Source of the DNA: Blepharisma stoltei ATCC 30299
Taxonomy: Eukaryota > Protista > Ciliophora
NCBI GenBank assembly: GCA_965603825.1
Contig: CBFDEM010000008.1
Coordinates: 186,001 to 250,000 of the forward strand
DNA: 64,000 bases
Direction of reading: 5' to 3'
The translations under genes and the position numbers were made by a program. How positions within the stretch are numbered: position 1 is the stretch's first letter; each line of letters begins with the position of its first letter. The notes beneath the pieces are model-generated. The model did not search any database. It worked only from the letters and a program-made list of their open reading frames with translations, and was not told the origin of the DNA. Below are positions 33,638 through 64,000 of the stretch, piece after piece.

Positions 33638-34223
33638 TTCTATTCTCTTTCGTTTGAACATGATTAAGCTTATTGACTTAAAAGACTAATAAAAGATTAA
33701 AAAGAATCATATACTATGGTTTAAAATAATGTTATGACTATATATTTAATGCTTTAAATTTTCCTTTATCTTTTTTAAGATTCCATCAATTCTTTCACAT
33801 AAAGCAAAGCTATTAAATAGAGAAACTTATAATAATAATAATAATAATAATTAATAATTAATTCGATATAACCTGTGGAATAATGTGTCAACTTTTTCTT
33901 TTCACAATTTATTCTTCTTGCCAAATAATTCAATAATTCAACGAACAAAATTTTAATATTTCAGCTGTCTTGTTTCAATCTTAACAAAGCAGATAACTTA
34001 TACTAAGTTATTTAATTTCTTATTTAATATCAGCTCTTAATTTATGCTATTTTTGATTTATTGTTTAAAATGATAATCTCAGCCTTAGCCTGATTTAATA
34101 AGCTATGCCCTATCTATTCAACAGAATTTTATAATAGTTAATTATCAATATTTTATAGCCTGAGATAAAGTTAGTTTAGGCGAAATCCATATTTTCATAT
34201 TAGATTTGTAGAATTCAATAAAT

Positions 34224-36604: not shown

Positions 36605-36667
36605 TTCTAATTAGCATATAAAATGGCTTAATCACTCTTATAGCTGAAATTTAATAGAAGTAAAATT

Positions 36668-36680
36668 TATAGAATCCAAA
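36668..36680 (+). promoter_or_regulatory. Candidate start-proximal motif T(A/G)TAGAAT (representative instance)
   Basis: Similar words occur within about 45 nt upstream of ATGs at 19774, 34224, 36681, 51633 and 53754, and inverted (ATTCTA) before 45431, 46397, 49310, 57852 and 58332. Confidence 0.35.
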
Positions 36681-39110
36681 ATGGAGTCTTCAGTCATCTC
36701 TTTCTGTCAGAACTGGTCAATAGTTTCAGCAATTTATATTTTTCAAGCAATTAATATAAATCAGCGTCTCAATCCAGATACAACTACAGGATATAACTTA
36801 AAGCAATGACTTGAAGAAGCAGCTCAGTGCCGCCTACCCTCAATTGATTTAAGCAAGTTTAATAGCCCAGTTTCCCAAAGCAGTTTACAAGACAGACTAG
36901 ATGAGCTTTATTCCCTACTTAAAAATAATGATATCCCCAATCAAAAGCGATCGATAAAATATTTATCAATTTCAAATAAAAAACTCATGGACGATAATCA
37001 AATAAATAAAAATACTATTGCTTTTTTCGCAAGGCTTGAAGGATCAGGAAATATTCAAACAAATCTTATGATAAAAAACGTCAATTGAAGGCTTGCTGCA
37101 GTCTTTTCAGGGAATCCAAAGATTTGCTTTTGCTATATTGATAATCAATGGAAGAATTTAAGCTGCAAATGTATGAACAATAATTGAAATGGATCTGACA
37201 CTATTCTTTGCTATACCAAAGACAAAAAACTAGAACCGATAAGTATAAATATCTCGAATCTGCAGAACACAGACTGTTTATTCTGCATGGGAAATAAAAA
37301 TGCAGTAAAGAATGAAAAGAAAAATGCAGGAAAAGCGATAAATAAAGGCAACTTAACTGCTAATAAAAACAGCCTTAAAGAAGAGAGCAAAATTGAGACT
37401 CCTCAAAAGAAGAAGAAAAATAATAATAATTGTATAGAGGGGCAAAAAAAAAAAGGCAGCTCCGGTAACTGTCGTATTTCGATAATAAATAACTCAACAA
37501 AACTAAGTGTTTTTACTAAGCCTATTACTTGCGTCGATTTTTTATCTAAAACTAGTGAATCAAATACAAGAGAGTCTGATATATCAGTCCCACAAGATCC
37601 TGCATTTCATGACTTCTCATGCCAATATTCACAAGGAGATCTATTCCCTAGCCAAGGTCCTATTTTTCAAGACTTCTCATGTCAATATTCCGAAGAAAAT
37701 TTGTGCCAGAATCAAAAACAAAGTAATTTCGACAAATGTTTTGACCATCAAAAACAAATTGACAGCTTGAAAAGCAAAATAAAACAGCAAGAAAAAAAAA
37801 TCGAGGATCTAGAGTTAACTTCTAAAAATGAAGCAAGAAAAGGGGAAAAAAAAGAAATTTTGCTTAATTTAGAGAATAGCAAAAGAGAAATTAATGATTT
37901 AAAAGAGACTATTGATGATAAAGAAAGAAAAATTAAAAAATTAGAACAAGAATTAGAATGTGAAAAAAGTAAAAACAAAGATTTTAGCATAAAGGAGATT
38001 GACAGTTTAAAAAAACTAAACGAGGAAATGAATAAATCAGATGAGAAAAGCAATAATCCTCCACAAAGTACTCTATGATGCTTTAAAGAATTAAGAAGAA
38101 ATTTTTTAATAATTGAAAATTCAAAGGAGAGTATCATGATAGCTTCAACTATGAAAAACCCTATTAAAATGACTGAAAGTTGTAAAGAAATCAATAATTA
38201 TGACCAAATTAAAAATAAAAATGCAATTTTTGAAGAAGAGAAGGCAGTTAAAGAAAACTTAAATATATATTCAGTGCCAATTTTTCAATATAGAAAATGG
38301 GGACTGCCTAATATAGGAAACAGCTGCTATATGAATTCTTTATTACAAATTTTAGCTAGTACTAACTGCTTTGTAAAAGCAGTTCAAAATATTTCGAATT
38401 GTCCTATGCTTGAAAAAATCTCGATATTAGCAGAACAAATTAGAAACAAGTCAACTAAAATGCAAGCTTTAATATCATCTCTAGAAAACTTTAGATTAGA
38501 AATAGGCAAACAATTTCCACACGTAAGTTCTACTTAGATAAGCTCATTTGCACAGCAAGATTGCAAAGAAATTTTTCAAATAATTGCAGCTTCCCTAGAC
38601 GAAATTATTCCAAATAATAATATTTTTTCTATTTTTGTCAAGCAAAATCAATATTGCTACTCCTGCAAGCGAGAGACTCATTTGCTTGACGAATACCAGA
38701 GCTTTTTAATAATCCCAACAACTAGTCAAGGAGATTTGAAAACTGTAGTAAAAGAAAGGGTTACAATGGAAAAAGTTTATGCTAAGAAAAATCAATTATT
38801 TTGTGAAAATTGTAAAGGAAAAAGAAAAATTAAGATCAAAATGGTAGAACATAAATGGCCTGAAGTCCTTGTTTTGTATTTTCCTGAAGAAAGCAGGCAG
38901 GTTAAACTAGATGAAAACTTAGATGTTGGAGAATGTAAATTTTTATTGTATGGAGTAATCAAATATATTGGCTCTGGCATGTTTGGGCACTATACTGCTA
39001 TGACCAAAGATGGAAAGATTTGGAATATCTACAATGACGATAAGGTTTATAAGACCCAATTTGAAGAAGAGGATAAATATTTAGCATTTTATAAGAGAAT
39101 AAACAATTAA
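36681..39110 (+). CDS. USP-C: compact ubiquitin-specific protease (C19), intact triad; intron 38523-38537
   Basis: Open from ATG 36681 with TGA=Trp. GLPNIGNSCYMNS; after splicing FAQQDCKEIF; FGHYTA; WNIYNDD; YLAFYKR. Confidence 0.85.
38523..38537 (+). other. 15-nt spliceosomal intron (representative of nine at the homologous USP position)
   Basis: GTAAGTTCTACTTAG. Equivalents at 40880-94(-), 45009-23(-), 47870-84, 50746-60, 53008-22, 55145-59, 56305-19(-) and 60398-412(-). All are GTAA...TAG with TA at positions 9-10, and removal deletes an in-frame TAG in front of the QQD box. Confidence 0.9.
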
Positions 39111-39499: not shown

Positions 39500-39980
39500 T
39501 ATGATGCTTGATTGTTTTCCACATCTAAAAGGGAATATCTATTAAAGCTAAAAGAAAATAATGGCTCTATGTCTTTATACAGGATAAATTCTAATAAAGT
39601 CACTAATAGTTCTTGGGCATCTTGCTGGCCCCCATGTATAAATACAGGAAATGCTGCATCAATTTCATATTTTTAACAATCTTACTTACGCATTTTGAGA
39701 CGTTTAAATAGCAGATGTTTCTAATAAAAGTTCTACTGAGGCTTCATAAATTTATCTTGCATAAGCCATGCAAAGATTTGCCTGGTCTTCATTGTGGACT
39801 TCAGGAAGAATACGTGAATTTCTTGGAATTTTCTGACAGCAAGCACGGATAAATGCAAATTGGCAGGGCTGTTTTCTTTTAAATAATCAGTATGCATAAA
39901 AGGCTTTAATCCTTAATAGAAATCTCATATGGTCGAAAATCATAATTGAAAAGTTTTCTTCCTTTTTCAACTGTCCCATG
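39500..39980 (-). pseudogene. USP relic (Cys box and QQD box fragments)
   Basis: Minus strand gives RNICYLN and YEIDAAFPVFIHGGQQDAQELLVTLLEFI in different frames with stops. Confidence 0.65.
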
Positions 39981-40336
39981 TTTTAAATAATAAGGATAAT
40001 CATCATGCAAAGAGAATCATAATTAATTATTTATTTTTAAGAATTAATTATTATTTGCATAGATATATTAATTTATTTTTATATCTTTCTTTATTAGCTC
40101 TTCTTCCTGAAAAGCCTAAAACATTATTTAAAAAATGGCATAAAAGAAAGCAAATTAACTCATATTTATTTCATATTACAGATAGAGAAAATCATAATAA
40201 AATATATAAATTGCTGACTAAAAGCTATTTCAAATATAACTAAATTGCATTATTATCCTAGATATTATAAATAATCTGTAAGAGCTCGCTATTTTTAATT
40301 TTAATAATATTTATAAAATAGCTATAGGATTTATGA

Positions 40337-42787
40337 TTAGTTTTTCTTATAAAATGCAAGGAAAAGTCTACCCCAATCAGGATCCTTTTTACTTACTTCA
40401 GAGTCATCATACTTCTCCCATTCATTTTCATCATTCTTAGTAAATGCTATGAAATGGTATCCATAATAACATATTACTCCAAAAATTTGGTAACTATTAT
40501 TTTCAAGATTCAGCATTTCTGGGATTTCTCCTAAAATCTGCCGATCAGATATATAAATTGTTAAAATTCTCGGCCATTCAATCCTTTCAGTTTTCATTAC
40601 TATATCCTTCAATTTTCCACATTCCTCACAGCTTAATTGATTTTTCCCTGAAAAACTCTTCTGCTCTTTAATATCATTTAAGAAAGCCTCTATATTATTT
40701 TGCCTATTTTTTGGTATTGCTATAAAATTTGTGCTGTCCTCACTTCATGATTTATGCTTAAAGCGAGAATTACAAGTGAATGATTGATTTTTTACAATAG
40801 TGAAAAGACTTTTATTCTCAACCTTATTTGAAATAATAATAAATAATTCCTTTGCATCATTTGCAGATCTTCCGCTGTACTAAATAAAATTTACCATTGA
40901 GTATTCTCTTGAAATTAATTGCTTAAAGTTTTCGATAAGTGGGATTGTTTTATTTTTTCCATAGTTAGCATTTATTGATAATATAACGGAATTTAAGCTC
41001 TGCAGTAAGTCATCGCCAGGAATGCTGTATAAATATTCAGCAAAATCAGCTGAGCTTGCTAATATTTGTATAACTGAATTCATATAACAAGTATTTCCTA
41101 TGTTTGGTAGGCCAGATTTGCTAAAACGCTGAGGTCTTAAGCTTTGAGTCTGTATGTGGGCGTTTAATAGTTGAGCTTCCCTTTCAGATCTCTCATTCTG
41201 AGCGTTTATATGATGGTTTTGTGGGAGTGTCCTTGTTTGGCTATAAAAATCTGGGTTGGATGTGATTTGAGGTTGATTTGATATAGCAAGAGTCTGACTG
41301 GGAATTCCAGATTTATATTTTTCTATTTCACTTTTAATACTTTTGATGTCTTCATTAACATAAAATTGCCAATTCTGTATATCCTTATTATAATTCTTTG
41401 ATTTCTCAATTTCACCAAAAAGACTATCTAGCTTTTCATCAGATTTATTTTTTATTTTCTCAATATCTTTTAATTCTGATTTTATTTTTTCAATAGAAAT
41501 TTGGTTTTCATTTTCAATACTTTTAATTTTTCTATTTAAATCCTCAAAAAATGAAGAATTTTCGGATAGACCTTCGCTATTGGCTTTGCAGTTTTTTTGC
41601 AACTCATTTAATTCAGCTTTAATACCCTGAAGTTGCATATCGGTATATTCTTTGCAGGTATCAATAACAGAATTAGCTTTAGCCGATTAGATTTCCAATT
41701 CATCTAATTTGGAAATTATTTCACTATTATTTGCATTTACCGCTGATTTCATATAGTCCAATATCCTATCACCTTTAAGTAATTCTTCTGTGCTGAGACT
41801 ATTATTTTGTTTTTCTTCATTATCCTTGAAGCATTTTTCCAATTCTTTCACTTTATTTAAAAGCATTTCTTCTCAGTAATTAAAATTGTTTTCTAGCTTG
41901 TTCTGCATATCTATAATTTCTCCCTCACTTTTTGCTTCTATATTATTGGCTATTGAACCTATTTTCTCTTGGAATTGCACCAATAATTTCTCTATTATTT
42001 CTTTGGATTTAGATTCCAAATCCTTTTCTATTTTTTTAGCTAGTTTTTCTTCTAAATAAGTGAAATAATTTTCAATAGTGGTTGAATTTGATATTATTTG
42101 ATTATAATTCTGTTTATTTTCTAATATTTTGGGATTAGTGTCAAGAATTTCATATTGATTACTGTAGTCGAAGTTTGACAAATTGCCTCCAAGAGAGTTG
42201 AGAGAAGGAGATAGTTCTCTTCCATAATCAGGGCTGTGCTCATAGCTAGGGTTTTGAACAGAAATTTGATCGTTAACCAGAGGGTTTAAGTCCTTTCTTA
42301 AATAAACTAAAATTGCTGGGAAAGATGCATTTGAATATTTTGATACTCTAGGCTTATTTCCAGTACAATCATACCAATCCTCGTTAACCTTGCACTTGAC
42401 TTGAGATATATCGATGTGCAAAATTAGCGAGTATTGACTAATTAAATCTGAATTTTTAATTTCAGCTTTTGTAAAAACAACCAGAACTTCTTTCGGTGGT
42501 TTTTTTAAGTAGTATTTTAAATCATTACTTTCTATTGTATTACTAATAAAATTCATACAATTTTTGTTTCTCAAACAAATTTTTTTAAATATTTCTAGAG
42601 TATTTTTACATTCCTGGCAACTTGTATTATCCAATTGATTATCATAAATCCCATTTTTAAATGCATTTGCTATAATTTCATGCAACTCTCTGTCCATTAA
42701 TAGGTCTTCTTGACCCAGATAAGCATGCATGTTGGCGTTAATGGTCGCTATCATCCAGCAGGCCTTCTTCAAATAAGAATTTCTCAT
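40337..42787 (-). CDS. USP-D: compact USP, intact triad; intron 40880-40894; active relative of USP-A/B
   Basis: Three ORFs join via TGA=Trp and a 15-nt intron. GLPNIGNTCYMNS, YYGYHFIAF, WEKYDD, LFLAFYKKN. Confidence 0.85.
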
Positions 42788-43486
42788 ATTTTTATTGCTT
42801 TCTACAAATTCAAGAAAGCCATGTTTATTTAAATCACTAAAAGCAGTTGCTAATGGTATTTAAGAGCAATAAAACAGAAATTGGGCTATCAGGAGATGGC
42901 ATAAAGTACTCAAAAGAAAATACAATAAATAAAAATAAATTTTGTTTAATAAGAGTCATGCTTTATCATCTTAAATTTTATAGATTAGTTAGCACAAATC
43001 TAGTAGATTTTTAGAATTATTCACAGAAAAAGTAGGTGAAAAATGCTTTTAATTCAAAAATAAGATTATTAAAAGAACTGAATAAAATATATTCTCCCCA
43101 TGTATTTTACCCAAAAAAAGTTTTACTCAAATATACGCATAATTATCAAAGAGTTAAATACATAAAATAGGATTAACCTAGTTGAAAAAGTGCATCAATA
43201 AATAATTTTCTATTAATTAATAGCTTAATTTATTTAAAAAGCAGATCATACAAATAATTAAAATATAAAGAGAATAGAATAGGAAGAATTTAAAAACTGA
43301 GTAATCAAACTTTATCTGTCCTAATTTATATCAAATTTATTAAAGCTCTAATTCTCTAGTTTAATATTCAGCTTTTAAAACCCCTGATTTCATTTATTTA
43401 TTATCCATTTTTAAACTATCAACAGCTCAATTCTACAATTTTGAACAGAAATTTTAGTATTTAATAATTATTAAATACCTACCTGG

Positions 43487-43730
43487 ACGATAATAATAGA
43501 AGATAAGGAAGGAAATGGACGCTTAGGTAAGTAGATAGCTTGTGAACTTATGATCGACTTCATGGAGAGCTTTTACAAATGTTTGAACGTCCAAATTCAA
43601 CACCGACTGTAATTTTTAATAATAAGTATTTAAATTTAGATCAGGTGGACATAGTTTGCAAGAGCTGGTCTTTGGAAAAAAACCTTACAATTAAATTTCT
43701 TGAGAAGATGAAAGGATTAAAATTAAGCTA
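43487..43730 (+). pseudogene. Decayed copy of the ubiquitin-like gene at 57604-57852
   Basis: Frameshifted pieces TIIIEDKEGNGR / VDSL[W]TYDRLHGELLQMF / VIFNNKYL / SLQELVF / TIKFLEKMKG align to TIRVEDMNGQQR / VNSSWTYAQLHNQFAQMF / VIFGNKYL / TLEQLRF / VIRVLQQMKGG. Confidence 0.75.
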
Positions 43731-44441: not shown

Positions 44442-45431
44442 TTATATAGAATTACCTAATTTTGAATAAAAAAGCATATAAGCATGATCATAGTCAGGAA
44501 GATCTTCTGTCACAAAAGCGTCGTTAAACTGATACCATTTTTCATCCTCACAAGTATAAGCAATATAGTGGCTGCATTGCTCAGCTTTATAATAGCATAT
44601 TACAGCATATAATTTATAGTCACTTTCCTGGAAATTTATTTCTGTCTCAGGCTTTCTATTCTTACTCGATGTATCAGTTACATAAAATACCAAAATTTTT
44701 GGCATTTCGAAAGAATCTACCTTGACTGTAAAGCTGTTTATTTCCTGGCAAACTTCACATTGTAAATTTAATTGATCTTCCTTGCTTTTTATGTTTTCTA
44801 AACATCTTTTTGCATTTAATTTATTGTTTGGAGGCATAATAAAAAATAATGATTTATCTGGTATTATATTTTTATGGCCTTTCTGGCATGTAAAAGTTTG
44901 GTTTTTTGTGATCTGGAATCTTTTTTCCTCATGACTGAATTCTTGTATATATTTATCTATTAAAATATTATAAAGCTCTTTACAGTCATTCTGTGCATAA
45001 AGTTCATACTAAATATTGTTTACCATAGGAAATTCTTTATTAAATGTATTTAAAAATTGTATAATTCTTGGTTTAAAACTGCTTGATGAGGTACGGGTAA
45101 ACATAAGATCAAAAATTTTTGATAAATTTATGAATAAAATGGCTTTAGATTTTGATATGAAATCTACAAAACTTGGAGTGCTCGAAAGAACTTGGATCAC
45201 AGAATTTAAATAGCAGGTATTTCCATAGTTAGGAATTCCGCTCTTCCTAGAGGATTGATTTACAAAAGCCCATTTTTCTAGTTCTTGATAATCTCTAGAG
45301 CCCATTAGCTTTTTGTTTTGCTTATTTTTACGCTTTTCCCATCATGCTGCTAGTTTTGGTCTCAAAATAAAAGCGCATATTCCAACTATAGTAGAGCCTA
45401 TAGCAAAATACTTAAAATAACTATAGCTCAT
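44442..45431 (-). CDS. USP-E: minimal USP with N-terminal membrane anchor, intact triad; intron 45009-45023
   Basis: MSYSYFKYFAIGSTIVGICAFILRPKLAA[W]WEKRKNK; GIPNYGNTCYLNS; YAQNDCKELY; SHYIAY; WYQFND. Confidence 0.85.
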
Positions 45432-46396
45432 TTATTTTTTATAGAATTTTAGCTCAAATTAAATATTAAATATAAACTCAAGAAGCAGACATATTTTCGC
45501 TTTAGGATTTTTAGAGTCCAAATTTAATAAATTAACTCAGATTTTTTATATTATATTATAATATTCAACATATTAATATATAAAAGAAATTATTAATTCA
45601 AATTATGAGAAATTAGATTTACTTGATGAGATAAATGATTATGACATCAGAAATTCCAGCACTAAGAGAAGCTGCAGTAGCAAGCAACTCAATATTATAT
45701 TTTAATTGCATGTGCATTTATATAATAAAAAAACTTTAAGATGAGACTTGTTTCGGAAGCCTCTAAAGAGCTATTTATTATCGCCATAAATTTATTTATG
45801 GAAAATTACCAAAATGATATGTTTATAATAAGCAAAAAGCAAGCAAAAAGCAAGCAATAATTTGTGAAAATGGAAACAGGGTATAATTATCTGAATCTAT
45901 CTTATTTTTAACTATTCAAGATAATAAAATATATAGAATGGCTAAATCAGCGTGTGGAAATAATAATTGCATTGGGAAAATGGGACATTATCAGATTCAA
46001 AGATAGAGTATCTTGCGTGTTTTTTCCTCTATATACTTCAAGGTAAATTTTGCCTAAAAGGTGATAAAACCAGCTAATGATTGATAATTCTGTAAATATT
46101 GTCATAATTAGTCCATTACTTAAATCTATTTTTATTATGATATAGATATAATCGAAATATAGACATTCAAATAATAAATATTTGTTAAAGATTCGCTTTA
46201 ATGCATATGTGGAATATTTTTTTATTATTTTGATATTTAATCTAAGTTCTATATTCTTTATTATAGATATTAAACCTTAAATGCAAGAAGCTAATTTTAT
46301 TCACAATCTGATAAGCTATGATTAGATAAAATCTTATGCTTTCAGATCCCAGGCATTGAATAATTAAAATGTCTAATATAATTCTATAAATTTATT

Positions 46397-48442
46397 ATGT
46401 CAGAAGATCTTAAAAAAGCAGCTTATATTCTTGCAACACTTAGTCAACATATAGAATTTCCTTTCAAAAATCAATGATTAAGCAAAATTTTTCAAAATGC
46501 ATTTACCTCAGGCATTGATGATGAAAGCCTTAGAGTACTTAAAACATGAATAAAATCAAAATGAAGTGGCACATTCCCTTATGTAAAAGAAATTATTAAG
46601 TACCAGGAATGAGAAGATATTTTTGCTTGGCCGAACGAATTGCTGCAACCATTTCAAGTAGCTGACATACCTAAAAAAATTGAAAAAGTTGGATTTTTTT
46701 TGTGCTGCACTAATAATAATTACATAGAGGAAATAGAAGGCTATATTTTAGTTGTAAAACTTTTTCTACCTGAAGGGATTTTAAAATGTAAATACGGAGA
46801 AGAATGAAAGGATTGCTCATCTCAGGAAACTGGCATAAACGATAAGCCTAAAATTTCTAATGCAATTTTTGGCTTTGTCAAAAACTGAGAAGAGCCTCCC
46901 AAAAATGAAATAGAAAAGGCTGAAGATCAAGGAACAAGAACAGAAAAAATTAAAGATAACCCTCAATACGTTATAGAAAACGATACTAAAAATATAAATG
47001 CTGACCAAATAAATGAAAAATTCAAACAAATAGAAGAAGAATTATCTAAATGCAAACAAATCAATGAATGTCTTAAAGCTGAGCTAACAGACGTAAAAAT
47101 AGAAAATAAAAAAGCATCCAATGATATAAGTGAAGTAAAAGCAATGATAGAGAACATGAGAAGTTCTTTAAATGAAAAAATAGATGAGACTAGCATAGAT
47201 ATAAAAAAAAGTTTAAATTATTTAAAAGAAGGACTAGATAAAGGTCAATTATTTATGGAAAATGTCCTTGAAAATTGCCAAAGTAATTTAAATCAACTTA
47301 AGTCTTACAAAAACCTCTCCACTAGCTCAAAAAGTGTACCATTAAAGAAAAATCAGGATTTTTCTTTTCCTTTTAATGCTGTTTCTGATTATTTTCAATG
47401 CATCAATAAAACTGCTCAAGATTGCATTCAAAAATACAATGAACTGGAAATTAAATACAATTCATTAATAGATATAAGCAATAATATGATGATTGAGACT
47501 AATAAGATGCACTCAGCATTAGAGGCGAAAATTAATGAAATTGAAGAAAAGACCCAAAAAATTTCAATACCAAATGGAAATGAATTAATTTCAAGCACGA
47601 AAAATGCTCTTGACTCAAAAACTATAAATAAAGACAATCCAAAGAGGAAAAAAAGGGGGCTAGCCAACATAGGAAACAGTTGCTATATGAATTCAGTTTT
47701 ACAGATCTTTGCAAGTATTCCAAGTTTCATCGAAAATATAAAAAACATTGAAAATGACTTATTTTATTGTTTAGGTGGCATAATATCGTCGATAACAGAT
47801 CCCTATTCTATAAAAACAGACGAAAAATTAAGAAAACTAAGAAACTTGCTGGCTAAAAAATATCCTATGGTAATTTATATTTAGTTTGGTGGAAATACAG
47901 AAAATGATAGCAAAGAATTATATGTTATCATAATAAATTTATTTATGGAACTTTGCCAAAGTGAAATGTTTTTAATTAACAAAAACCAAGCGATAATTTT
48001 TGAAAGTAACCACAGGTTAAAATTGCCTGAACATCAGCTATTTTTAACTATACCTGATAATGAATTGTCAATTGAAGAATGGCTTAATCAGCTTAAAAAT
48101 GAAAATAAATTATTTAGTGGAGATAATAATCTATTCTGTGAAACTTGTGGGCAGAGATCTGATTCAGAGATGGTGACAGAAAGCATTGAGCCTCATGAAA
48201 TTTTAGCATTTTATAATGCTAAAAGTAAAAACCCGATTGAAAATATTCCTGATGTTGTATCCTTAGGGAAAAATCATTATGAAATATTTGGAATAATTTG
48301 GTACAATAGAAGCCACTACATAGCTTATACAAGAGAAGAGGGAATTTGAAATGAGTATAATGATAACTATGTCACAACAGATAAGCATCCAAATCCAAAA
48401 AATATCTATATGCTTTTTTATAAAAAAGTTATAATTAATTAG
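46397..48442 (+). CDS. USP-F: compact USP, intact triad; intron 47870-47884
   Basis: Open from ATG 46397 with TGA=Trp. GLANIGNSCYMNS, SHYIAY, [W]NEYND, YMLFYKK. Confidence 0.82.
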
Positions 48443-49309
48443 TTTTTATCAAATTTTGAGTTTAGTTGTTTAATTTTAAATTTAATTTGCTTCCTTGCAT
48501 GTGTAGACAGCTGAAGTAATTACAGCTAACTCTTTCTGCTTCCGAACACTTTTATAGCGTACCCATCTAATCCAGTTGCTATGTTCTTTAACAGACTGAC
48601 TCTTTAGTCTCTAGAATTTCAATTTTGGCCGAAATATATTTTTAGCAGAAACAATAAAAGGAGCAGGGATTTCTTCTTATTGTCAAAGCTCTGTATTTAA
48701 GTCAAATCAAGCTTAGCCTTTCATTTCCTAGCTATAAAGTAATTTTATTATAATTAAATACAATTCCAACTTTATCTTGTAAATTTTTATCGATATCTAT
48801 ATAAAATATTTATTTTGATAAATATTGAACTTTTAAATAATATAAATCGAAACGATGTTATTTAAAATACAAGAGAGAATGCTTATTGAGATTTTAATAA
48901 ATAAATCTCGTTTGCTCATCTATAATTTCTAGTTATAACTGTGAAGCAAGCTTAAAAGTTGATTTTATTTCTATAATTAAAATAAAAAATCATAAAAAGC
49001 TATTTTTGGAATAATCTTTTTAACTCATTGTTAAGATCTTTCTTAAACAAAATCTATACCCCAAAATCAAAAATTGCCATAATTGCACCAACTTACAATT
49101 ATTATGTAAACTAATTTGATATAAAAGCAATCCTATGCCAAAATTTTTAAATAAATTTTATCATCTGAGATGAATTATGCATAGCATTGCTCTAGAAGTT
49201 GAAAATCAGCATTCTGATAATTTTTTCTAATGATTTAATATTAAAGCTAAATTCTTTATTCTTTGATATAGATATTATAAAATGTCTAATATAATTCTAT
49301 AAATTTATT

Positions 49310-51315
49310 ATGTCAGAAGAGCTTATAAATACAGTTTATATTCTTGCAACAATCAGTCAGCATATAGAATTTCCTTTCCGAAATTCATGATTAAGCAAAA
49401 TTTTTCAAAATGCTTTTACCTCAGGCATTGATAAAGAAAGCCTTAGAGAACTTGGATATTTAACAGGAAGAAGCTTAAGCGGCACCTTCCATTATGTAAG
49501 AGAAATTATTAGATTTCAGAAATGTGAAGATATTTTTGCTTGGCCAAACAAATTGTTGCATCCATTTCAAGTGTCTGACATACCTAAAAATATTGAAAAA
49601 GCTGCATTTTTTATTACTTGCACTAATAAGGATTATATAGAGGAAATAGAAGGCTACATTTTAGTTGTAAAACTTTTTCAACCTGAAGGAATTTTAGAAT
49701 GTAAACACGGAGAAGAATGGAAGAGTTGCTCATCCCAGAAAATGGGTAATTATAAGCCTAAAAACTTTTCTGTGATTTTGGGCTTTGTAAAAAATTGAGA
49801 AGATATCAAAATTGAAGAAAAGACAGTAGAAGAAAATAAAGATAATGAGGCAAAAACAAAAAATGTTGAAAAAAGCCCACAAGATTTTGAAGAAAATACT
49901 ACTAAAAATATAAATGCGGACCAAATAAATGAAAAACTCAGACAAATGGAAGAAGAATTATCTAAATCTAAACTAAGCAATGAATGTCTCCAAGCCGAGC
50001 TAATGAGAGAAAAATTAAAAAATAAAAATACAAGCAGCAACATGCATCGGGTAAAAGTAATGATTGAAAATATGAGCAAAAAAATTTATAATACTAGGAT
50101 AGATTTAGAAAAAAAATTAATATATTTAAAAGAAAGAGCAGAAGAAAGCCAATTATGTATCAAAAATATCCTAGATAATTGCCAAAGTAAATTTAATCAG
50201 CTTCAATCTTTCGTAGATGACTCCGCTGGCTCAAAAAATGAGCTAGACAATAAAAAACCCGATTTTTCTATAGCTTTTAATGCTATTTCTGATTATTTTC
50301 AATGCAGCAATAAAACTGCTCAAGATTGTCTTCAAAAATTTAAAGAGTTGGGAAATGAATGCTATTCATTAAAAGAGAAGTGCAATGAGATAATAAATGA
50401 GATTGATAGCAAACCCTCATCATTAATAGCAAAAAATAATGAAAGAGAAGAAAAAACCAAAAAAATATTCAGAAGTGAGAATTCTTCTGTATCAAGATTT
50501 TCACATTTCCCGGCTCTCAAAAGGAAAAAATATGGATTGGTCAATATAGGAAATAGTTGCCATCTGAATTCAGTTTTGCAGATTTTTGCAAGTATTCCAA
50601 ATTTTATAGAAAAAATAAGAAACATTGAGAATAACTTATTTTATTCCTTAGGTGAAGTACTATCGTCGATAACAGATCCCTATCCTTTTTTAAATCTGGA
50701 AAATTAAGAAAACTAAGAGACTTGCTTGCTAGAGAAGATCCTATGGTAAATTATATTTAGTTTGGCGGAAGCACTTATAATGACTGCAAAAAATTATATG
50801 TTATTATCGTAAATTTATTTATGGAACTTACCAAAAATAGCATGTTTTTAATAAACAAAAATGAAGCTGTAGTTTGTGAAAATAACCACAGGAAAGAATT
50901 ATCTGAGCCTCAAGTGTTTTTAACTATACCTGATAATGAATTAGGCATCAAAGATTGATTAAATCAGCTCGAAAATGACCAAAAATTATATAAAGGAGAT
51001 GATAATTTATTTTGTGAAGATTGTGGGCATAGATCTGATTCAGATATCGTGACAAAAAGCATTAAAGCTCACGAAATTTTAGCTTTATGTAATGCCAAAA
51101 GTAAAAACTCGATTGGAAATATTCCTAATCGTGTTTCCTTAGGCCAAAGTCAGTATGAAATATTTGGAATAATTTCATACAGCGAAAAACACTACATAGC
51201 TTATACAAGAGAAGAGGGAATTTGAAATGAGTATAATGATCAGGAAGTCAGAGAAAACAAGTCTCCAAACCCCAAAACTAGCTATATGCTGTTTTATAGA
51301 AAAACTTACCATTAA
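49310..51315 (+). CDS. USP-G: tandem paralog of USP-F; frameshift near 50695; intron 50746-50760
   Basis: MSEELINTVYIL vs MSEDLKKAAYIL; GLVNIGNSCHLNS, KHYIAY, [W]NEYND; TAA 51313-51315. Confidence 0.7.
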
Positions 51316-51632
51316 TTAGCTTTTTATTTATCAATTTTTTGGAATAAATTATCATTATTTAATTTAAATTATTATTTAGTGTAAGCAAAATTGATAGTAA
51401 ATAATTTTTTATCGTCAAAATCAATAATTATTATGATTTACAATTCACTGTAAAAAGTCATTTTTGAAGAATCCTAACAGCTAAACTTTTTAATTTTGGC
51501 TACTTGCAGAAATTGTGTATCCTCACAGGTCTTCCTGGCCTGGCTCATTAAAGATTCATTAGAATCTTATAGCTAAAATAGTCTAAAAATGTTTTTACAT
51601 GCATTTTTTATAGAATCAAAAATATAAATAAA

Positions 51633-53631
51633 ATGTCAGACGCTGCCTTATGAAATTTAAAAGCTACTCTATTAATAGTGAGCTCTTTGACAAGATATGT
51701 AGACCTTAGGTTTCCTTATTTATTATGGCCATTTGTAGATCAAGTCTTAAATAATTTAGAGGAAGGTCTTGAACAATATAAAAATTTCTTAAATCCTTTA
51801 TCCAGGAATCTTGAAGAAATTTTAGCTTGAAACAGATGAGCCATCTCTTGCAAAAATATAGATTTATTAAATTTAAAGATACAAGAGAGACTTCCTTGTG
51901 GAGAGATATTAATAATAAAAAGTTATTCTCAAAATGTTTCAGCTGTAGTCAAAGAAGCTCAATATACGTATTTTCTTGTATCTGCTCTTTCATGCAATGG
52001 CAACATTGTATATATTTGAAAAGATGGAGCTTGGAAACGAGAAAGCTCTGACTCTTCTTATTCTAATAGTTTTTATGAGCTTTACTATTTTTACTATTGC
52101 AAAATTACTCCAAAATCTATTTCTAAATTATTGCGATTGGACGATGTTTGCAATACAAATGATAACTTATTTCAAGTAATGATAAAAATATGAAATTTTA
52201 CTAAAGAAAGCAAAAATATATTTGATTTTGATGAAGAAATAGAGGCTAGAATGAAATATAGCGGAATAATCGAAAAAATTAATAAAGAAAAAGAGGATGC
52301 TCAAGCAGAAATAGCAAGATTAGAATCAAATAACAAAAATTTAGAATCAGATATTAAAAAATATAAAGAATATATAGAGGAATATATAGAGGAATATCAA
52401 AGAAATGAAAACAATTTAAAAAATTTGAATTACTCTTGGGAAGAAAAGTGCAAATCGCTTGATAATGAGCATCAAAAGCTCACGAAAATGACTAAAGAAA
52501 AAGAAGAGAGCAGCAATGAAGCTATCAAGCTACTTAATCAAAAAATTATTGATTTGCAAAATGAAAAAAATATTTTAGAAGCTGAAAATTTTTATCTTAA
52601 AAATTCTCTTTCAGAAAAAGAAAATCTCCTACAAAAAGCATCAGATGAGCACCACAAAATCTCTGAAAAATATAATATTTTGCAAGAAAAATGCAAAAAT
52701 CTTAAAGAAAAACTAAATAAAGCCAATTATTCACAAATACTCTACAACCCAGAAAATGAAATTGTTCAATTACCTCCAAACACAAAGCACGGGCTGCCTA
52801 ACCTTGGAAATACCTGCTATTTAAATTCTCTTCTGCAGATTTTTGCAAGTACTCCTCTTTTTGTAAGTAAAATTGCCTCTATTGATTCTCCTTTTTGTAA
52901 TTCTTTGTCATCTCTTTTATCTAATATGCATATTGAAAACAGCTCTAAGACAATCAGCAATTTAACTAGAAATTTCTCAAAAACATCTAATGGAGGCTTA
53001 TTCAAATGTAAAAATTATTTAGATTAAGGAGTACACTCAGCAAGATGTGAAAGAAGTGTTTAACATGATTTTAAGCAAAATTGAAGAGGAAGGGGGAAGC
53101 TTTAATATTTTTTCAATTGTTTTTCATCAGGTTTTCAGCTGCTTGAATCTGCATAAGTCAACTTATGATGATACCCAAACGTTTTTGATCATTCCTCCTC
53201 AGCATAAAAATGCACAAGACAATTATCTTAGAAATCAAAGCTACTATTATAGATCAACACAGTCATTATTTTGTAATGACTGCAATAGAAAAATTGATAT
53301 GAGCATAGAGCTGAAAGGTGTCGATTGGCCAGAATATCTGGTGCTTTATTTCCCAACACCTCCAAATAATATTGTAGAATCCCTCTGAATTAATAATGAG
53401 AATAGCTATGAAATTTATGGAGTTATTTGTTATTATCAAAATGAAGGAAGTTTTCATTATACAGCGTTTACAAAAGACGGAAATATATGGAATGAGTATA
53501 ATGATAAATATGTTGGGACAAAAGCAATAGACCCTCATTTTGTAAATTTGGCATTTTATTCCAAAAAAGTAGTGCTGAGCCAAAATATGATAGCTGAAAA
53601 GCCCTATCAGTCGCATTTTTATAATTCTTAA
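51633..53631 (+). CDS. USP-H: compact USP; frameshift near 52978; intron 53008-53022
   Basis: Open from ATG 51633 with TGA=Trp. GLPNLGNTCYLNS, YTQQDVKEVF, SFHYTAF, WNEYND. Confidence 0.72.
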
Positions 53632-53753: not shown

Positions 53754-55741
53754 ATGCAAGATGATATACAATGAAATCTTAGACACTGCATGAGCTCTTA
53801 CTAGCTCTCTTTGACAATTTATCGATTTTCCTCCCAGCACTGAGTCTCAGGACATTAATTATAAGCTTAGAGATAAATATTTTATAACAACTAATTACTA
53901 TTATAAGACAAGAACTTTTTATGAAACTTTGCAAAGTATTAGAAGAAAGTAATTGAATAATTTCTTGTGTTGATGAAAAACTAATAAGTATGAGAGTTCA
54001 AGATAAACTTCTTTGTGCTGGAGATGAAATATTAATAATAAAAGGCTCTTCAGAAATAAATATATCAGCAATAGCAAAAGAAGGACTTAATAGCTATTTT
54101 CTTGTAGCAGCGCTCTCATGTGATGGAAGGAGCCTTATCTATTGAAAAGATGGAATATGGAACAACGACTTCGAGAGGCACTTACATGAGAAGAAATGAG
54201 CTCTATTATTTTTATTATTGCAAGGCGAATCAAGCAAGAATACATGAATATCTAAGAATTAAGTATTATCCGGCTAATATTCCGGACATTACCATGTATT
54301 GGAAAATATATGAAAATATAATAGAAGCTGCGAAAGTACATCTGACTACTTCTGCAATAATGGATTGCCAAATAGAGATACCATTAATGAAGAAAATAAA
54401 AATACTTTTGCTGTCGAAAGTAATGAGAAATTGAGGGAAGAAAATGAGAAAAATAAGTTCACCATTGCAAGTTTGGAAGCAAAAATAACAGAATTAGAAG
54501 GAAAATTAAAAAGCTATCAAAAGCTGCCAAGATCAAATAAACGAATTAGAAAAATCTATAGGGTCTTTAAAATATGATAATGATCTGCTTAAAAATGAAA
54601 ATCAAGAGCTTAAACTGAAAGCCAATTTACAATGAAAAAGAAAAAAATGAATATAAACAAATACATAAGACGAACATTGAAGCTATTGACCAATTAAAAC
54701 GAAACCTTAGCGATAAAGAAGATCAAAACAATAAGCTAGAAAAAGACATTAGCATTTCAAATGAAACTCTTACTAATAAAAATATCGAACTTCTATGAAG
54801 CCATGGAAACAAACAAACTATTACAGGAAAAGCTCAAAGACCTTGAAGAAAAAAATAAAATCAGTAACTCACAAGCACTCTACGACCCAGAAAATGAAAT
54901 AATTAAATTGCTTCCAAACAGAAAGCATGGCTTGCCTAACTTTGGAAACACCTGCTATTTAAATTCTCTTTTGCAGATCTTTGCAAGCACTCCTCTTTTA
55001 GCAAGAAAAGTTGAATCTATAAATTCTCCTTTTTGCAATTCTTTGTATCTGCTTTTAGACAGCATGTTTAAAGATAACAGCTTAAAAACAATCAGAAATT
55101 TAACGCAAGATTTCCGTCAAAATTTAATGGCTACCTATTCAAATGTAAAAAATATTTAGATTGAGGCTTATAATCAGCAAGATGCTAAAGAAGTATTTAA
55201 CATGATTTTAAGCAAAATTGAAGAAGATGGGGGGAACCTTGACTTATTCTCTATCGGATTTCATCAGGAATTTATTTGCAAGACCATGCTTAAGCATCGA
55301 TCTGAGTATCATGATATCCAAATATTTCTAATAATTCCTCCCTGCCATAAGGATTCGGTTGAAAATTATCTTTATTACTTAGGCACTTATTATAATTCAA
55401 CGCAAAAGTTAATTTGTAGCGAATGCAAAAGAGAAGTTAATACAAGCATTCAACTGAAAAAGGTTGATTGGCCAGACTATCTGATACTTTATTTTCCCAC
55501 TCCTCCTGATAGAATCACAGATAGTATTAGAATTAATTATGAAATTATATATGAAATGTATGGAGCTATTTGTTATTATCAAGATGAAGGCTCTTTTCAT
55601 TATACAGCATTTACAAGAGATGAAAATGAATGGAATGAATACAATGATGAGCATGTTGAAACAAAAAAAATAGATCCTCACGTTATAAACTTGGCATTTT
55701 ACTGCAGAAAAACATATTCACGACCAATTTATAGTCGTTAA
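53754..55741 (+). pseudogene. USP-I: paralog of USP-H with multiply frameshifted 5' half and intact USP domain; intron 55145-55159
   Basis: GLPNFGNTCYLNS, YNQQDAKEVF, SFHYTAF, WNEYND; 53754-54760 matches USP-H only in broken frames. Confidence 0.72.
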
Positions 55742-56014
55742 AATAATCTTAATTCTGAATAAAAATTATTTTAATTCATATCTGGATGCAAATTCGTAAT
55801 TGAGAATTTCCGTTTATAAATTGGTTAAAGTGGTAATTTTATATATAATTCAGAAATTTATTAAATATATAGGTAAAGGCTTAGTTAAAACCTATAAATA
55901 GCAATCTTAGCTAGAGTTAATATAAAAAAGTGCAAAAATTTTCAAAAATAAATCCTTTTATTTTATTTTCTCACGCCAAATTCTTATTATGTAAATAATA
56001 TAATATACAAAAAA

Positions 56015-57480
56015 TGATCAGTTCATTTTTATTTTGCATTTTTCACAATATAATTGATTATCGCCAAAAAATCCTATGGCTTTTTTAATTCTGCTAAAAA
56101 TTCTTGTATAGAGTAGAATTTTTTACTGGGAATTGTAATAAAAAGGTTTGCTTCAGGTACTTTTGCAATGTGATTACAAACATGACAATTCAAAGTTTGC
56201 TGATATAAGGTTGTAAATAAAGGATCTACATAAGTTAAATCTGATAATTTTCCTATGAGGATGACCATTAATTCTTTAGAGTCCTGCTGAGTAAAATTTC
56301 CAAGCTATATAAAGATTACCCAAGGGAATTCTGCATCAAGTTGATATTTAAAAGAACTTACAAGCTTTTGAGTATCATTAGACCTAGGATTTCTAATACT
56401 CAATAATAGAGACGATAAAGTAGAAAATAATCCATATTCCAAAGTCTGGATTTTTTCATAAAATTCATTATTGCTTGCAAGTACTTGGAGGAGGGAATTA
56501 AGATAGCATGTATTTCCTATATTAGGATCTGATTTTTTCTTGTCAAAAATTAATGGATAGTTTATAACTGGGGGTGGTCTTATTGGTTCAATTTTTTCTA
56601 TTATAAATTTGATCTGAGATTGAAGATTTTGGTTATCTTGCATTAAGATTTGGATTTCTTGCTTTAGATTTTGAATTTTAGTCTTGTGCTTTTTAGATTT
56701 TGCCTGTAGAATTGCATTATCTGCCTGTATAGTTGCATTATATGCTTCTGAAGATTGATATTTATCTATTATCTTATATTCGTTTAATAATTTATCTTTT
56801 TCTTCTGCTTTTATAGATACAGATAGAGGCACTGAAATTGGCTTTAATCACTTTTTTGTACCTATTATTGCTTTAAAAGAAAACTTTTCGTTATCATCCT
56901 TTTCATTATCAAGGTCATTGATTTTTGTATAAACATAAATCGTTACTTCGCTGGGAATTAGTTTTTTTTTACCGTTTGGGTTTTCACTGAGATTTTTTCA
57001 TTTATCTTCAAATTTGCAATACAACTTTCTCTGTCCATTGTAGGTTAAAACTGCTGTTAATAAATAAACGATTCTATTGCCTTCAAAATAAGGAAATGGT
57101 TTTTCCTTGCTTAATCTTTTGAATGTTTTTTCTTCAGAATTATTTGTTCAAAAAATGATTTTTCTTCGTCTTTTTGAGGAAGATACTTTATGCTGAGAGA
57201 TCTATATTGGTCTCTTTCGAAGTATTCTAGAATATATTGGTTAGAAATATCCTCAAAAATTTTTGTCATTAAAAATTCATTGGTAAATGACAAAAAATCT
57301 TGATTTGATTCATAATTTCTTAAGAAAGTGCCTATTTCTGAATGTGGATCTATGCCTTGACAAGCCTTATTGCACAAAAGGATATTGATAATTGCCTTCT
57401 CAGCTAATGAAAGGGGATTTCCTTCCTTAATCGTAGATTTATTATAAATTTGGGCTATTTTTAGATTCCATAAATTATAA
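56015..57480 (-). pseudogene. USP-J: frameshifted USP lacking the His box; intron 56305-56319
   Basis: PNIGNTCYLNS; FPW|LGNFTQQDSKEL after splicing; homology ends after GDNQLYCEKC near 56030. Confidence 0.7.
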
Positions 57481-57603
57481 AGGTATAGAAATATGAAATT
57501 TATATTTCTAAGGCAACTTATCAATTGTTCAGACTTATTACAATGATGAGTTCAAAAATTTATTCACAAATTCCATTATTTTAATTTTAAACATAAATTT
57601 ATC

Positions 57604-57852
57604 TTAAAACCCTCCCTTCATCTGCTGTAGCACACGAATAACGCAGTTATTAGTAAATCTTAATTGTTCCAAAGTAGCAGTTCCTTGAGTGACTACACTC
57701 AAATACTTATTCCCAAAAATCACACTTAATTCACCACCTCCAAACATTTGCGCAAATTGGTTGTGAAGCTGAGCATAAGTCCACGAGCTGTTTACTTGTA
57801 TTGTGCGCTGCTGGCCGTTCATATCTTCTACTCTTATTGTCAAGTTCGACAT
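57604..57852 (-). CDS. Divergent ubiquitin-like protein, 82 aa, C-terminus LQQMKGG-F
   Basis: Ubiquitin-like size and pattern: LTIRVEDMNGQQRTIQV (cf. MQIFVKTLTGKTITLEV), LSVIFGNKYL (cf. QRLIFAGKQL), TLEQL, VIRVL..GG. Clean ORF, more GC-rich than its flanks. Confidence 0.8.
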   Translation of the reverse strand: MSNLTIRVEDMNGQQRTIQVNSSWTYAQLHNQFAQMFGGGELSVIFGNKYLSVVTQGTATLEQLRFTNNCVIRVLQQMKGGF

Positions 57853-57994
57853 TTTATAATTATAAGAAACTGAGATTTGTGAAAATAATTGTAGAATCTT
57901 AATGAAATAAGTACTTTTATAAAGTAAATAAGGAAAAGATAATTATTAAAATGAGAAAACTGCAAATAAGGGCAGCAGTAGAATTATTAAAGAA

Positions 57995-59854: not shown

Positions 59855-61451
59855 CTATGAGCTTATAAAAAACGCAAGATAGCACGAACTGAAATCTGGC
59901 TGCCAAATCTTCGAGTTATTATCTAAATATTCTCTCCATGCACATCCATCTTTTGTATATGCGACATATTTCTTCACGTTTTCTATCTGATAAAGACATT
60001 TGATTGCTCCATATATTTCATATTTTGATTCCATATAATTAAATTCTTCAGGAAGAATATATTGATTTTCCATTGGCAATTTTAATATTAAAAATGATCC
60101 CGCTTCAATGTGTTCTACTGTTCTGCTCACCAATTTAGTTTGATTGCAAATACTGCAAAATTCTTCACATCAAATAGTTGTTTTTATATTTTGATCAATT
60201 TCTTCGTGAATTGGTTTATTTGTAAAATTCATAAACTCAATTACATTTATATAGTCATTTTTTATATTTTCATGCCCAACTCCACAATTAACTCTTGTCG
60301 TTAATATAGTTGAAAATAATTTTTGATTTGGACAATATTCATGCAGCTTATTTATAAGTCAGTTGATCACATTTTTAGGGTCTTTTTCAAAATTAGCCTA
60401 TATAAAATTTACATAATAAGAGTTCTGTGCTAAAGTTATGCTAAAATCCGATAGTAAATTATCAACGAAGTTTTGGAAATTTGACCTTTTCATAGCATTA
60501 AATAAAATATTTAAGCTCAGTAGCGTTGGGTCCATTGGACTTTTTGATAATTCAACAAATAAAGATGAGCTAGCAAGAATCTGCAATGCTGAGGTGAGGT
60601 AGGAATTATCATTTATATCAGAAAATCCATGTTTTTGGCCAGGGAGAAGAAAAATCATTGAGGTAAATAAATCACCATTTCCTACTGTTCGGTAAGCTTG
60701 GCTTGAGCTGAGATGCTGATTTTCAGCTTGAAAGGTATGATAATTCCCTGGCTCATAATAAGCACTTCTTGATAAATTTAAATTACTTAGAACAGGCTCC
60801 TTATCTATGCTTACTTGGCTTGAATTTTCAATAAGTTGACTGAGTCTTTTTACTTCATTTTTCAAATCAGCCACGTCTATTTCTAAGCTTTTTATTTTCG
60901 CTGCAGTATTTTCTCTATTAATTTCTATTGTCCTCTCATTTCCTGGATTTTGCCCGCCCAGCACACAGCTATTGGCAATATCCCCATAATTAATAAACTC
61001 ACTTATAAAACTTTCTAGCTGTGATTGGACGTCATTAGGATCATTAAGCAGTAGGATTTTTAGCAATGGGTCTTCCTCATTTGTCCTTATTTCTTTCGTT
61101 GTCAAAATTTTTCTTATATATTTGTCAATTATTCTGATTCCTAATTCTAGCGAATTTAACCCATTTTTATTGATTTCTTCAAGGTTTTTCATATTTGTAG
61201 AAACATATGAGATAAGTTGTGATTTAATATTGTTTATTTTTGATTTTTCTTCTTGAAAAGATCGCAAAATGCTTATCTGGGCTGGGCTTGACAGGCTCAC
61301 GATATAGGTATTCAAACCTGTGAGTTAAAGGGCTAGAATTGGAATGGGATTTTTTATGTCGTTTGCAAAAAACTAACTTTTCAGCCTGGCAGTCGCAAAT
61401 GTATTTAGGCTTTTCGTGGCATGATGGGATGCTACAAATATTGTAGTTCAT
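59855..61451 (-). CDS. USP-L: Zn-motif + coiled coil + dead USP domain; frameshift near 61285; intron 60398-60412
   Basis: CSIPSCHEKPKYICDCQAEKLVFCKRHKKSH; Cys box GFSDINDNSYLTSALQIL (C>S); His box VKKYVAYT (H>K); CYLAFF. Confidence 0.7.
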
Positions 61452-61686
61452 AATTAAAGTTTATTAAGAAATTTTAGTTTTTACCTTAAGCTCTGCTATA
61501 AAAAGGGAAAGCGAATATTGTTGACATTTATGATGGCAGTAACATTAGACCTCACCAGTTTAACTTGAAATAAAAATCATTAACTGCACACTCTTATTTA
61601 GTGGCTTAATGGATATCATTTAATGCTCTTGTGTATTAACTATATAGCAGATTTTGAATAAAATTTAGCTAGCATTATAATAATTA

Positions 61687-61920: not shown

Positions 61921-64000
61921 GGTGTTAGGGTGTTAGGGTGTTAGGGGTGTTAGGGTGTTAGGGTGTTAGGGTGTTAGGGTGTTAGGGTGTTAGGGTGTTA
62001 GGGTGTTAGGGTGTTAGGGTGTTAGGGTGTTAGGGTGTTAGGGTGTTAGGGTGTTAGGGTGTTAGGGTGTTAGGGTGTTAGGGTGTGTTAGGGTGTTAGG
62101 GTGTTAGGGTGTTAGGGGTGTTAGGGTGTTAGGGTGTTAGGGTGTTAGGGTGTTAGGGTGTTAGGGTGTTAGGGTGTTAGGGTGTTAGGGTGTTAGGGTG
62201 TTAGGGTGTTAGGGTGTTAGGGTGTTAGGGGGTGTTAGGGTGTTAGGGTGTTAGGGTGTTAGGGTGTTAGGGTGTTAGGGTGTTAGGGTGTTAGGGTGTT
62301 AGGGTGTTAGGGGTGTTAGGGTGTTAGGGTGTTAGGGTGTTAGGGTGTTAGGGTGTTAGGGTGTTAGGGTGTTAGGGTGTTAGGGTGTTAGGGTGTTAGG
62401 GTGTTAGGGTGTTAGGGTGTTAGGGTGTTAGGGTGTTAGGGTGTTAGGGTGTTAGGGTGTTAGGGTGTTAGGGTGTTAGGGTGTTAGGGTGTTAGGGTGT
62501 TAGGGTGTTAGGGTGTTAGGGTGTTAGGGTGTTAGGGTGTTAGGGTGTTAGGGTGTTAGGGTGTTAGGGTGTTAGGGTGTTAGGGTGTTAGGGTGTTAGG
62601 GTGTTAGGGTGTTAGGGTGTTAGGGTGTTAGGGTGTTAGGGTGTTAGGGTGTTAGGGTGTTAGGGTGTTAGGGTGTTAGGGTGTTAGGGTGTTAGGGTGT
62701 TAGGGTGTTAGGGTGTTAGGGTGTTAGGGTGTTAGGGTGTTAGGGTGTTAGGGTGTTAGGGTGTTAGGGTGTTAGGGTGTTAGGGTGTTAGGGTGTTAGG
62801 GTGTTAGGGTGTTAGGGTGTTAGGGTGTTAGGGTGTTAGGGTGTTAGGGTGTTAGGGTGTTAGGGTGTTAGGGTGTTAGGGTGTTAGGGTGTTAGGGTGT
62901 TAGGGTGTTAGGGTGTTAGGGTGTTAGGGTGTTAGGGTGTTAGGGTGTTAGGGTGTTAGGGTGTTAGGGTGTTAGGGTGTTAGGGTTAGGGTGTTAGGGT
63001 TAGGGTGTTAGGGTGTTAGGGTGTTAGGGTGTTAGGGTGTTAGGGTGTTAGGGTGTTAGGGTGTTAGGGTGTTAGGGTGTTAGGGTGTTAGGGTGTTAGG
63101 GTGTTAGGGTGTTAGGGTGTTAGGGTGTTAGGGTGTTAGGGTGTTAGGGTGTTAGGGTGTTAGGGTGTTAGGGTGTTAGGGTGTTAGGGTGTTAGGGTGT
63201 TAGGGTGTTAGGGTGTTAGGGTGTTAGGGTGTTAGGGTGTTAGGGTGTTAGGGTGTTAGGGTGTTAGGGTGTTAGGGTGTTAGGGTGTTAGGGTGTTAGG
63301 GTGTTAGGGTGTTAGGGTGTTAGGGTGTTAGGGTGTTAGGGTGTTAGGGTGTTAGGGTGTTAGGGTGTTAGGGTGTTAGGGTGTTAGGGTGTTAGGGTGT
63401 TAGGGTGTTAGGGTGTTAGGGTGTTAGGGTGTTAGGGTGTTAGGGTGTTAGGGTGTTAGGGTGTTAGGGTGTTAGGGTGTTAGGGTGTTAGGGTGTTAGG
63501 GTGTTAGGGTGTTAGGGTGTTAGGGTGTTAGGGTGTTAGGGTGTTAGGGTGTTAGGGTGTTAGGGTGTTAGGGTGTTAGGGTGTTAGGGTGTTAGGGTGT
63601 TAGGGTGTTAGGGTGTTAGGGTGTTAGGGTGTTAGGGTGTTAGGGTGTTAGGGTGTTAGGGTGTTAGGGTGTTAGGGTGTTAGGGTGTTAGGGTGTTAGG
63701 GTGTTAGGGTGTTAGGGTGTTAGGGTGTTAGGGTGTTAGGGTGTTAGGGTGTTAGGGTGTTAGGGTGTTAGGGTGTTAGGGTGTTAGGGTGTTAGGGTGT
63801 TAGGGTGTTAGGGTGTTAGGGTGTTAGGGTGTTAGGGTGTTAGGGTGTTAGGGTGTTAGGGTGTTAGGGTGTTAGGGTGTTAGGGTGTTAGGGTGTTAGG
63901 GTGTTAGGGTGTTAGGGTGTTAGGGTGTTAGGGTGTTAGGGTGTTAGGGTGTTAGGGTGTTAGGGTGTTAGGGTGTTAGGGTGTTAGGGTGTTAGGGTGT
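61914..64000 (+). repeat. Telomeric array (TGTTAGGG)n = (CCCTAACA)n, at least 2.08 kb
   Basis: Direct reading. G-rich strand runs 5'-3' toward the end; this 8-mer is the repeat known from heterotrich ciliates (Stentor, Blepharisma). Confidence 0.98.

Follow-up and report, generated by a model that had tools for sequence, protein, structure and literature searches.

P0001, an 82-aa ubiquitin-like protein (UBL) encoded in a 64,000-nt stretch of Blepharisma stoltei DNA (the window), together with its relatives and the E1, E2 and USP genes clustered with them, probably forms a dedicated Blepharisma UBL pathway. As predicted from sequence, a USP would trim Phe82, the E1 would activate the modifier, the E2s would join it to its targets, with ordinary E3s probably not involved, and the USPs would take it off again. 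The fold, the terminal GG, selection, gene linkage, catalytic residues and interface substitutions are established.

The gene for P0001 is a single exon at 57604..57852 (minus strand). Its ORF runs from ATG to TAA and the product ends in VLQQMKGG-F. The Gly80-Gly81 codons are at 57610..57615 (minus strand) and are followed by Phe82 as a one-residue extension. The protein contains two Lys (K49 and K79). Because UGA codes for Trp in B. stoltei, TAA is the true stop; introns in this organism are 15-16 nt long (bioRxiv 10.1101/2021.12.14.471607). Contigs from four probable RNA runs (an automated guess as to their RNA nature; contig depth is unusable for ranking genes) span 57579-57883 without gaps, crossing both the start and the stop, and none of them lies on the spacer upstream of P0001. 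The MAC+IES record is colinear with the ORF and shows no IES inside the gene. An altered C-terminus generated by read-through or splicing was considered and ruled out by the gapless probable-RNA contigs, the genetic code and the colinear MAC+IES record. The initial annotation of an 82-aa ORF ending in KGG-F, with two Lys and one residue past the diglycine, was thus borne out on re-reading, and the ORF is confirmed as a real gene. P0001 is under purifying selection (dN/dS about 0.15), the values against two paralogs being 0.15 and 0.17. An ortholog in an MMETSP transcriptome (P0003), probably from B. japonicum, is 90% identical and has the same KGG-F end.

The AF2 model of P0001 is a five-strand, one-helix beta-grasp (pLDDT 88.9), and Foldseek matched SUMO1 and ubiquitin equally well (TM about 0.8, E about 2e-6, 14-22% identity), in agreement with the fold proposed earlier. 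P0001 therefore has two features of a type I (conjugatable) UBL, the beta-grasp fold and a C-terminal diglycine, here with a short tail behind it. Sequence searches assigned it to no known UBL: the score against Pfam ubiquitin (PF00240) is 17.1 bits, under the cut-off of 25.4, P0001 falls below all Pfam cut-offs, and there is no Rad60-SLD match. The identity to the ubiquitin of B. stoltei itself is 23%, and ordinary polyubiquitin is encoded separately in the genome. Shared with ubiquitin, NEDD8 and SUMO are the fold (TM about 0.8), the GG end and the equivalents of Ile44 and Lys48 (I45 and K49), but P0001 is only 14-23% identical to them, has two Lys, and has Arg42 and Arg72 replaced (S43 and Q77). 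Ubiquitin and NEDD8 are marked by high conservation and an LRLRGG/LALRGG tail, neither of which is found in P0001 (tail LQQMKGG). The marks of SUMO are likewise absent, as there is no QxGG tail and no N-terminal arm and the identity in structural alignments is 14-19%. The earlier view that no UBL family can be assigned is upheld by these results.

In the B. stoltei genome (41.5 Mb, 64 contigs) P0001 belongs to a family of at least 15 proteins that have one, two or three UBL domains and are 14-91% identical. The closest copies are 91% identical and the distant mono-, di- and tri-domain relatives 14-51%. GG closes 13 of 15 terminal UBL domains and none of nine internal ones (Fisher p 4e-5), while two members end in GC instead. 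Tails past the GG range from 0 to 14 residues (one member stops at the GG itself) and the residues preceding it differ widely across the family. Modifiers that are trimmed would be expected to show just this, a GG confined to terminal domains despite such variable flanks. The position-72 equivalent is Q, K, R, H, F, C or Y, and a match between a UBL Gln and an E1 Gln is thus not a family rule. The initial annotation had named a non-beta-grasp structure, a non-conserved GG and orthology to a known UBL as outcomes that would speak against it; none of the three occurred. The UBL tree was unresolved and did not recover monophyly of all cluster UBLs.

Some family members have unusual forms. A three-domain P0001 fusion (G000:C18:551640-552344, minus strand) is built of 231-nt units with junctions lacking GG and ends in KGC; its 231-nt repeat joint is present in an RNA contig, and the fusion is a possible decoy. 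Two di-domain UBLs (G000:C9:501460-502053 and 506323-506898) start with MGGSSS and MGGKSS, respectively, and carry a Pro-rich linker. These starts could be a myristoylation signal, which would make the two proteins membrane-anchored modifiers. A single-sequence fold of one C9 di-UBL was uninformative (pLDDT 34). One solitary UBL copy (C1:219960) has no USP cluster. Other tandem ubiquitin-domain gene groups, many of them two-domain, are found at C27:183-206 kb, C35:594-597 kb, C2:119-122 kb, C60:5 kb and C22:9-14 kb and are possibly further UBL families. Outside Blepharisma, no P0001 relatives were detected in 5.8 billion proteins or in metagenome or viral contigs, searches that are weak for short divergent proteins. 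Two non-ciliate matches among 50% representatives were rejected as repeat proteins with chance similarity. The ESM Atlas returned unnamed clusters at 0.93-0.94 for the UBL query.

A compact divergent USP subfamily gave 57 matches, nearly all within about eight regions of the genome. Within 10 kb of these USPs, an area that makes up 0.9% of the genome, are 18 of 19 UBL loci, five of seven two-ThiF E1 loci and 21 of 93 E2 loci. The extra E1 and E2 paralogs that the initial annotation had proposed to search for are therefore present and clustered with the UBL family. In the C11 and C15/C35 clusters UBL, E1, E2 and USP genes stand side by side. In the stretches of cluster core that were read, nearly every long ORF is a USP, E2, E1 or UBL, and B-box-like Kelch/TPR genes border the cores. 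No HECT genes were found in the clusters and no RING pattern in the loci examined. The clusters are segmental duplicates of one another (C15/C35 99.9%, window/C18 84-93%), so that the loci are not independent and binomial linkage p-values are inflated. The linkage may have arisen once; what counts is that four unrelated gene families were brought together at all. C15:668-685 kb and C35:754-770 kb are 99.87% identical across 15.6 kb, so that either the duplication is very recent or the assembly has doubled the region. Although most of the clusters are found at the ends of contigs, the label "subtelomeric" is uncertain because contig ends carry little meaning in the B. stoltei assembly (bioRxiv 10.1101/2021.12.14.471607). 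Among the neighboring sequences, a polyubiquitin gene with a divergent fourth unit adjoins the C18 cluster (C18:546031-546957), with ubiquitin relics on the other flank of the cluster at about 569300-569700, and an RVT_1 reverse-transcriptase element adjoins the C15 UBL copy (C15:649-653 kb). Seven divergent HECT genes, candidate lineage-specific E3s, are grouped on one contig (C50:333-453 kb).

The cluster in the window lacks an E2; besides P0001 and about 12 copies of USP genes it contains a second UBL, which is broken, and the relic of an E1. The second UBL (43487..43730, plus strand) carries stops and frameshifts and ends in KMKGL. The relic (39716..40016, minus strand) is a frameshifted fragment with 63-81% identity to the cluster E1s. 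The earlier claim that proteases of the right class flank the UBL was correct in that the USP genes are real, but the three nearest are damaged in the assembly. The copy directly downstream of P0001 is broken (55950..57475, minus strand). The USP divergent from P0001 (58290..59815, plus strand) has Cys and His boxes, and its reading frame is interrupted near 59505, a site at which one RNA contig has an extra base. The third, a B-box-like/coiled-coil/USP copy (59858..61460, minus strand), lacks the catalytic Cys and His. Further to the left, several copies still have their catalytic residues. On the plus strand, compact USPs are located at 36615..39107 (Cys box at 38301, a 15-nt intron, and the His box in the second exon), 46382..48439 (Cys box at 47657, His box again in the second exon), 49295..51312 (both boxes present, reading frame interrupted in a T run near 50690) and 51582..53628 (Cys box at 52791 and His box at 53416, with a 15-nt intron immediately ahead of 53023). 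A compact USP catalytic domain at 54740..55741, also on the plus strand, has its Cys box at 54929, its His box at 55559 and an intron at 55145-55159; where its 5' end lies is uncertain. On the minus strand they are located at 40340..42859 (Cys box 41113, His box 40483) and 44445..45431 (Cys box 45239, His box 44609). Two more compact-USP copies on the plus strand (31356..33686 and 34379..36601) lack the catalytic Cys and His. The cluster extends to the contig end, where a telomere repeat, (TGTTAGGG)n, runs from about 61923 (61923..64000). A family whose members begin with a B-box-like Cys/His motif and a coiled coil and continue with TPR, Kelch or, at 59858-61460, a dead USP domain is present at 16000-31000 and 61684-61917 of the window, and a 3139-codon ORF at 2264-11680 (minus strand) has no Pfam match.

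Pairwise identity among the three cluster E1 proteins is 75-87%, and their identity to B. stoltei UBA1 is 45-48%; UBA1 of B. stoltei and of Stentor share 69% identity. In a quick tree (UBA7 not included) they form one clade beside heterotrich UBA1 (SH-aLRT 100, stem 1.09), a placement that is unsure because of the long branch. None of 117 other E1 best hits falls between 45% and 75% identity to them. Against PDB entries the cluster E1 scores 515 bits to UBA1 and 376 bits to UBA7, and UBA1 also outscores UBA6. It was concluded that the cluster E1 is a diverged, long-branch UBA1 duplicate. P0011 (contigs C15/C35) is intact, with the ATP motifs and catalytic Cys kept, an open frame in the MAC and the UBA1 architecture IAD-FCCH-4HB-AAD-SCCH-UFD. 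P0010 lacks the catalytic Cys and P0012 is frameshifted ahead of the UFD; with the relic in the window, damage affects three of the five E1 loci in the clusters. The dN/dS values of all cluster E1 pairs are 0.14-0.25. A further two-ThiF E1, 41% identical to the cluster E1, lies off-cluster at C55:255878-258736.

HPN and the catalytic Cys are kept in all 11 cluster E2s, which have a median identity of 41% among themselves; the one searched is closest to UBE2D. Two cluster-type E2s with 44-45% identity are located outside the USP clusters (C2:464666 and C17:158871). Many compact USPs keep Cys, His and Asn/Asp and others are dead or broken, as judged exon by exon on unjoined exons. The Q-box Glu, which in USPs contacts ubiquitin Arg72, is retained in the compact USPs, and these enzymes may therefore also cleave ubiquitin. 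The candidate E1, E2 and protease are linked to the UBL family and have co-diverged with it.

Yeast Uba1 contacts ubiquitin Arg72 through Asn574, Gln576, Tyr586 and Asp591, and UBA1 selects for Arg72 (PMC3731359). P0011 keeps the equivalents of the first three and has Gln in place of the Asp, and the UBL residue facing this pocket is Gln77 in P0001. The Asp is present in 115 of the 117 other E1s, and the three cluster E1s have Gln, Gln and Trp. A Leu constant in all 117 is Glu or Lys in the cluster E1s. The loss of the near-invariant Asp, and the restriction of GG to terminal UBL domains, argue against the best-surviving alternative, in which the UBLs are trimmed but unconjugated and serve the USP array as free adaptors, as decoys or as competitive inhibitors, the clustered E1s and E2s acting on ubiquitin. 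This alternative draws on the retained Ile44 and Lys48 equivalents, on the two GC-ending members (the tri-domain one found in an RNA contig) and on the true polyubiquitin gene next to the C18 cluster, and we consider it improbable. Slightly less probable again is conjugation of the UBL by way of ordinary UBA1, or of the second E1 on C55, together with ordinary E2s and E3s, which would make the clustered E1 incidental: an E1 relic alone and no E2 in the window cluster, and the damaged E1 loci, would be consistent with it, but P0001 lacks the Arg42 and Arg72 equivalents and the intact cluster E1 shows purifying selection. A third alternative, in which the clusters are segmental copies of ubiquitin-system genes that now have no function and are decaying, is very unlikely and largely contradicted already by the selection signal (UBL and E1 dN/dS well below 1), as well as by the P0003 ortholog, the RNA-type contigs and the preserved catalytic residues of most E2s and many USPs, despite numerous pseudogenes, recent duplicates and most clusters lying at contig ends.

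In the preferred reading, P0001 is made as a precursor and gives rise to a conjugatable modifier, whose pathway is specific to Blepharisma and insulated from ubiquitin. A clustered compact USP would cut off Phe82 and expose Gly81. The cluster E1 P0011 would then adenylate the UBL and form a thioester, with a specificity suggested by the pocket Asp-to-Gln change facing Gln77. In UBA1 the acidic UFD residues Glu1037/Asp1047 dock E2 helix A (PMC4223017, PMC12355090), which carries the basic motif (K/R)RxxK/R (PMC12355090). The cluster E1 has Ile/Gln at the two UFD positions and lacks both the Arg72-pocket Asp and the acidic UFD patch of UBA1. The helix-A motif is found in none of the 11 cluster E2s (a count of cluster E2s alone). 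Since acidic E1 and basic E2 docking residues were lost in parallel, the UBL is predicted to pass from the cluster E1 to the clustered UBE2D-like E2s, which would join it to target lysines. The Phe62 equivalent and SPA, which are E3 contacts in E2s (PMC9954413), are likewise absent from all 11 (again cluster E2s alone), and the clusters have no E3; for these reasons attachment probably proceeds without the usual RING/HECT E3s. With only two Lys in P0001, the tag is probably mostly single. The USP array would finally take the UBL off its targets.

The ISG15 system (ISG15, UBA7, UBE2L6, USP18) shares with this predicted pathway a lineage-restricted UBL, an E1 from UBA1 duplication (for UBA7, PMC11354881), its own E2 and a USP-type deconjugase. 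A precursor tail past the GG is also shared, and tandem-domain UBLs with GG on the last domain occur in the Blepharisma family. Unlike the ISG15 system, the Blepharisma E1 is independently derived from ciliate UBA1 and, judged by PDB score and by its place beside heterotrich UBA1 in a tree without UBA7, is not a UBA7 ortholog, P0001 has one domain and not two, and LRLRGG is found neither in P0001 nor in its multi-domain relatives. Blepharisma has about 15 modifiers, at least 11 E2s and about 50 USP copies, compared with one each for ISG15, and its genes are physically clustered with no E3 seen in the clusters. The bacterial Bil/Bub operons similarly place UBL, E1, E2 and DUB next to each other without an E3, as in the Blepharisma C11 and C15/C35 clusters, and Bil tags phage proteins (bioRxiv 10.1101/2023.09.04.556158). 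The Blepharisma parts, however, are all eukaryotic (UBA1-architecture E1, UBE2D-like E2, USP rather than JAB, spliceosomal introns), and searches of databases, metagenomes and viral contigs gave no hint of a bacterial or viral source. FAT10/UBA6/USE1 has in common a UBA1-architecture E1 for a non-ubiquitin UBL and tandem domains, but the cluster E1s stand nearer to ciliate UBA1, at 45-48% identity, and their PDB scores for UBA1 exceed those for UBA6 and UBA7. FAT10 is made without a precursor tail. In the best reading, the Blepharisma pathway is analogous to ISG15 and Bil and a member of neither.

No published description of a Blepharisma UBL pathway was found in the literature. To our knowledge, few UBL pathways have their own UBA1-type E1 (ubiquitin, FAT10 and ISG15), and we know of clustering of all four gene classes in prokaryotic operons and in no eukaryotic UBL system. 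If the proposal is right, this would be a further UBL pathway with its own UBA1-type E1, one that arose separately in a single-celled eukaryote, and it would show insulation from ubiquitin by matched changes at the UBL-E1, E1-E2 and E2-E3 interfaces. Birth-and-death evolution in every component suggests a role in defence or conflict, an assignment by analogy that we make tentatively and rate at somewhat below even. With similar reserve, the E3-free, operon-like UBL arsenal may serve cell-autonomous immunity, with diversified modifiers (some apparently myristoylated) and E2s tagging viral, ingested or endosymbiont proteins, as a ciliate counterpart of ISG15 and Bil. The Blepharisma components provide a handle on the question of UBL-based immunity in ciliates.
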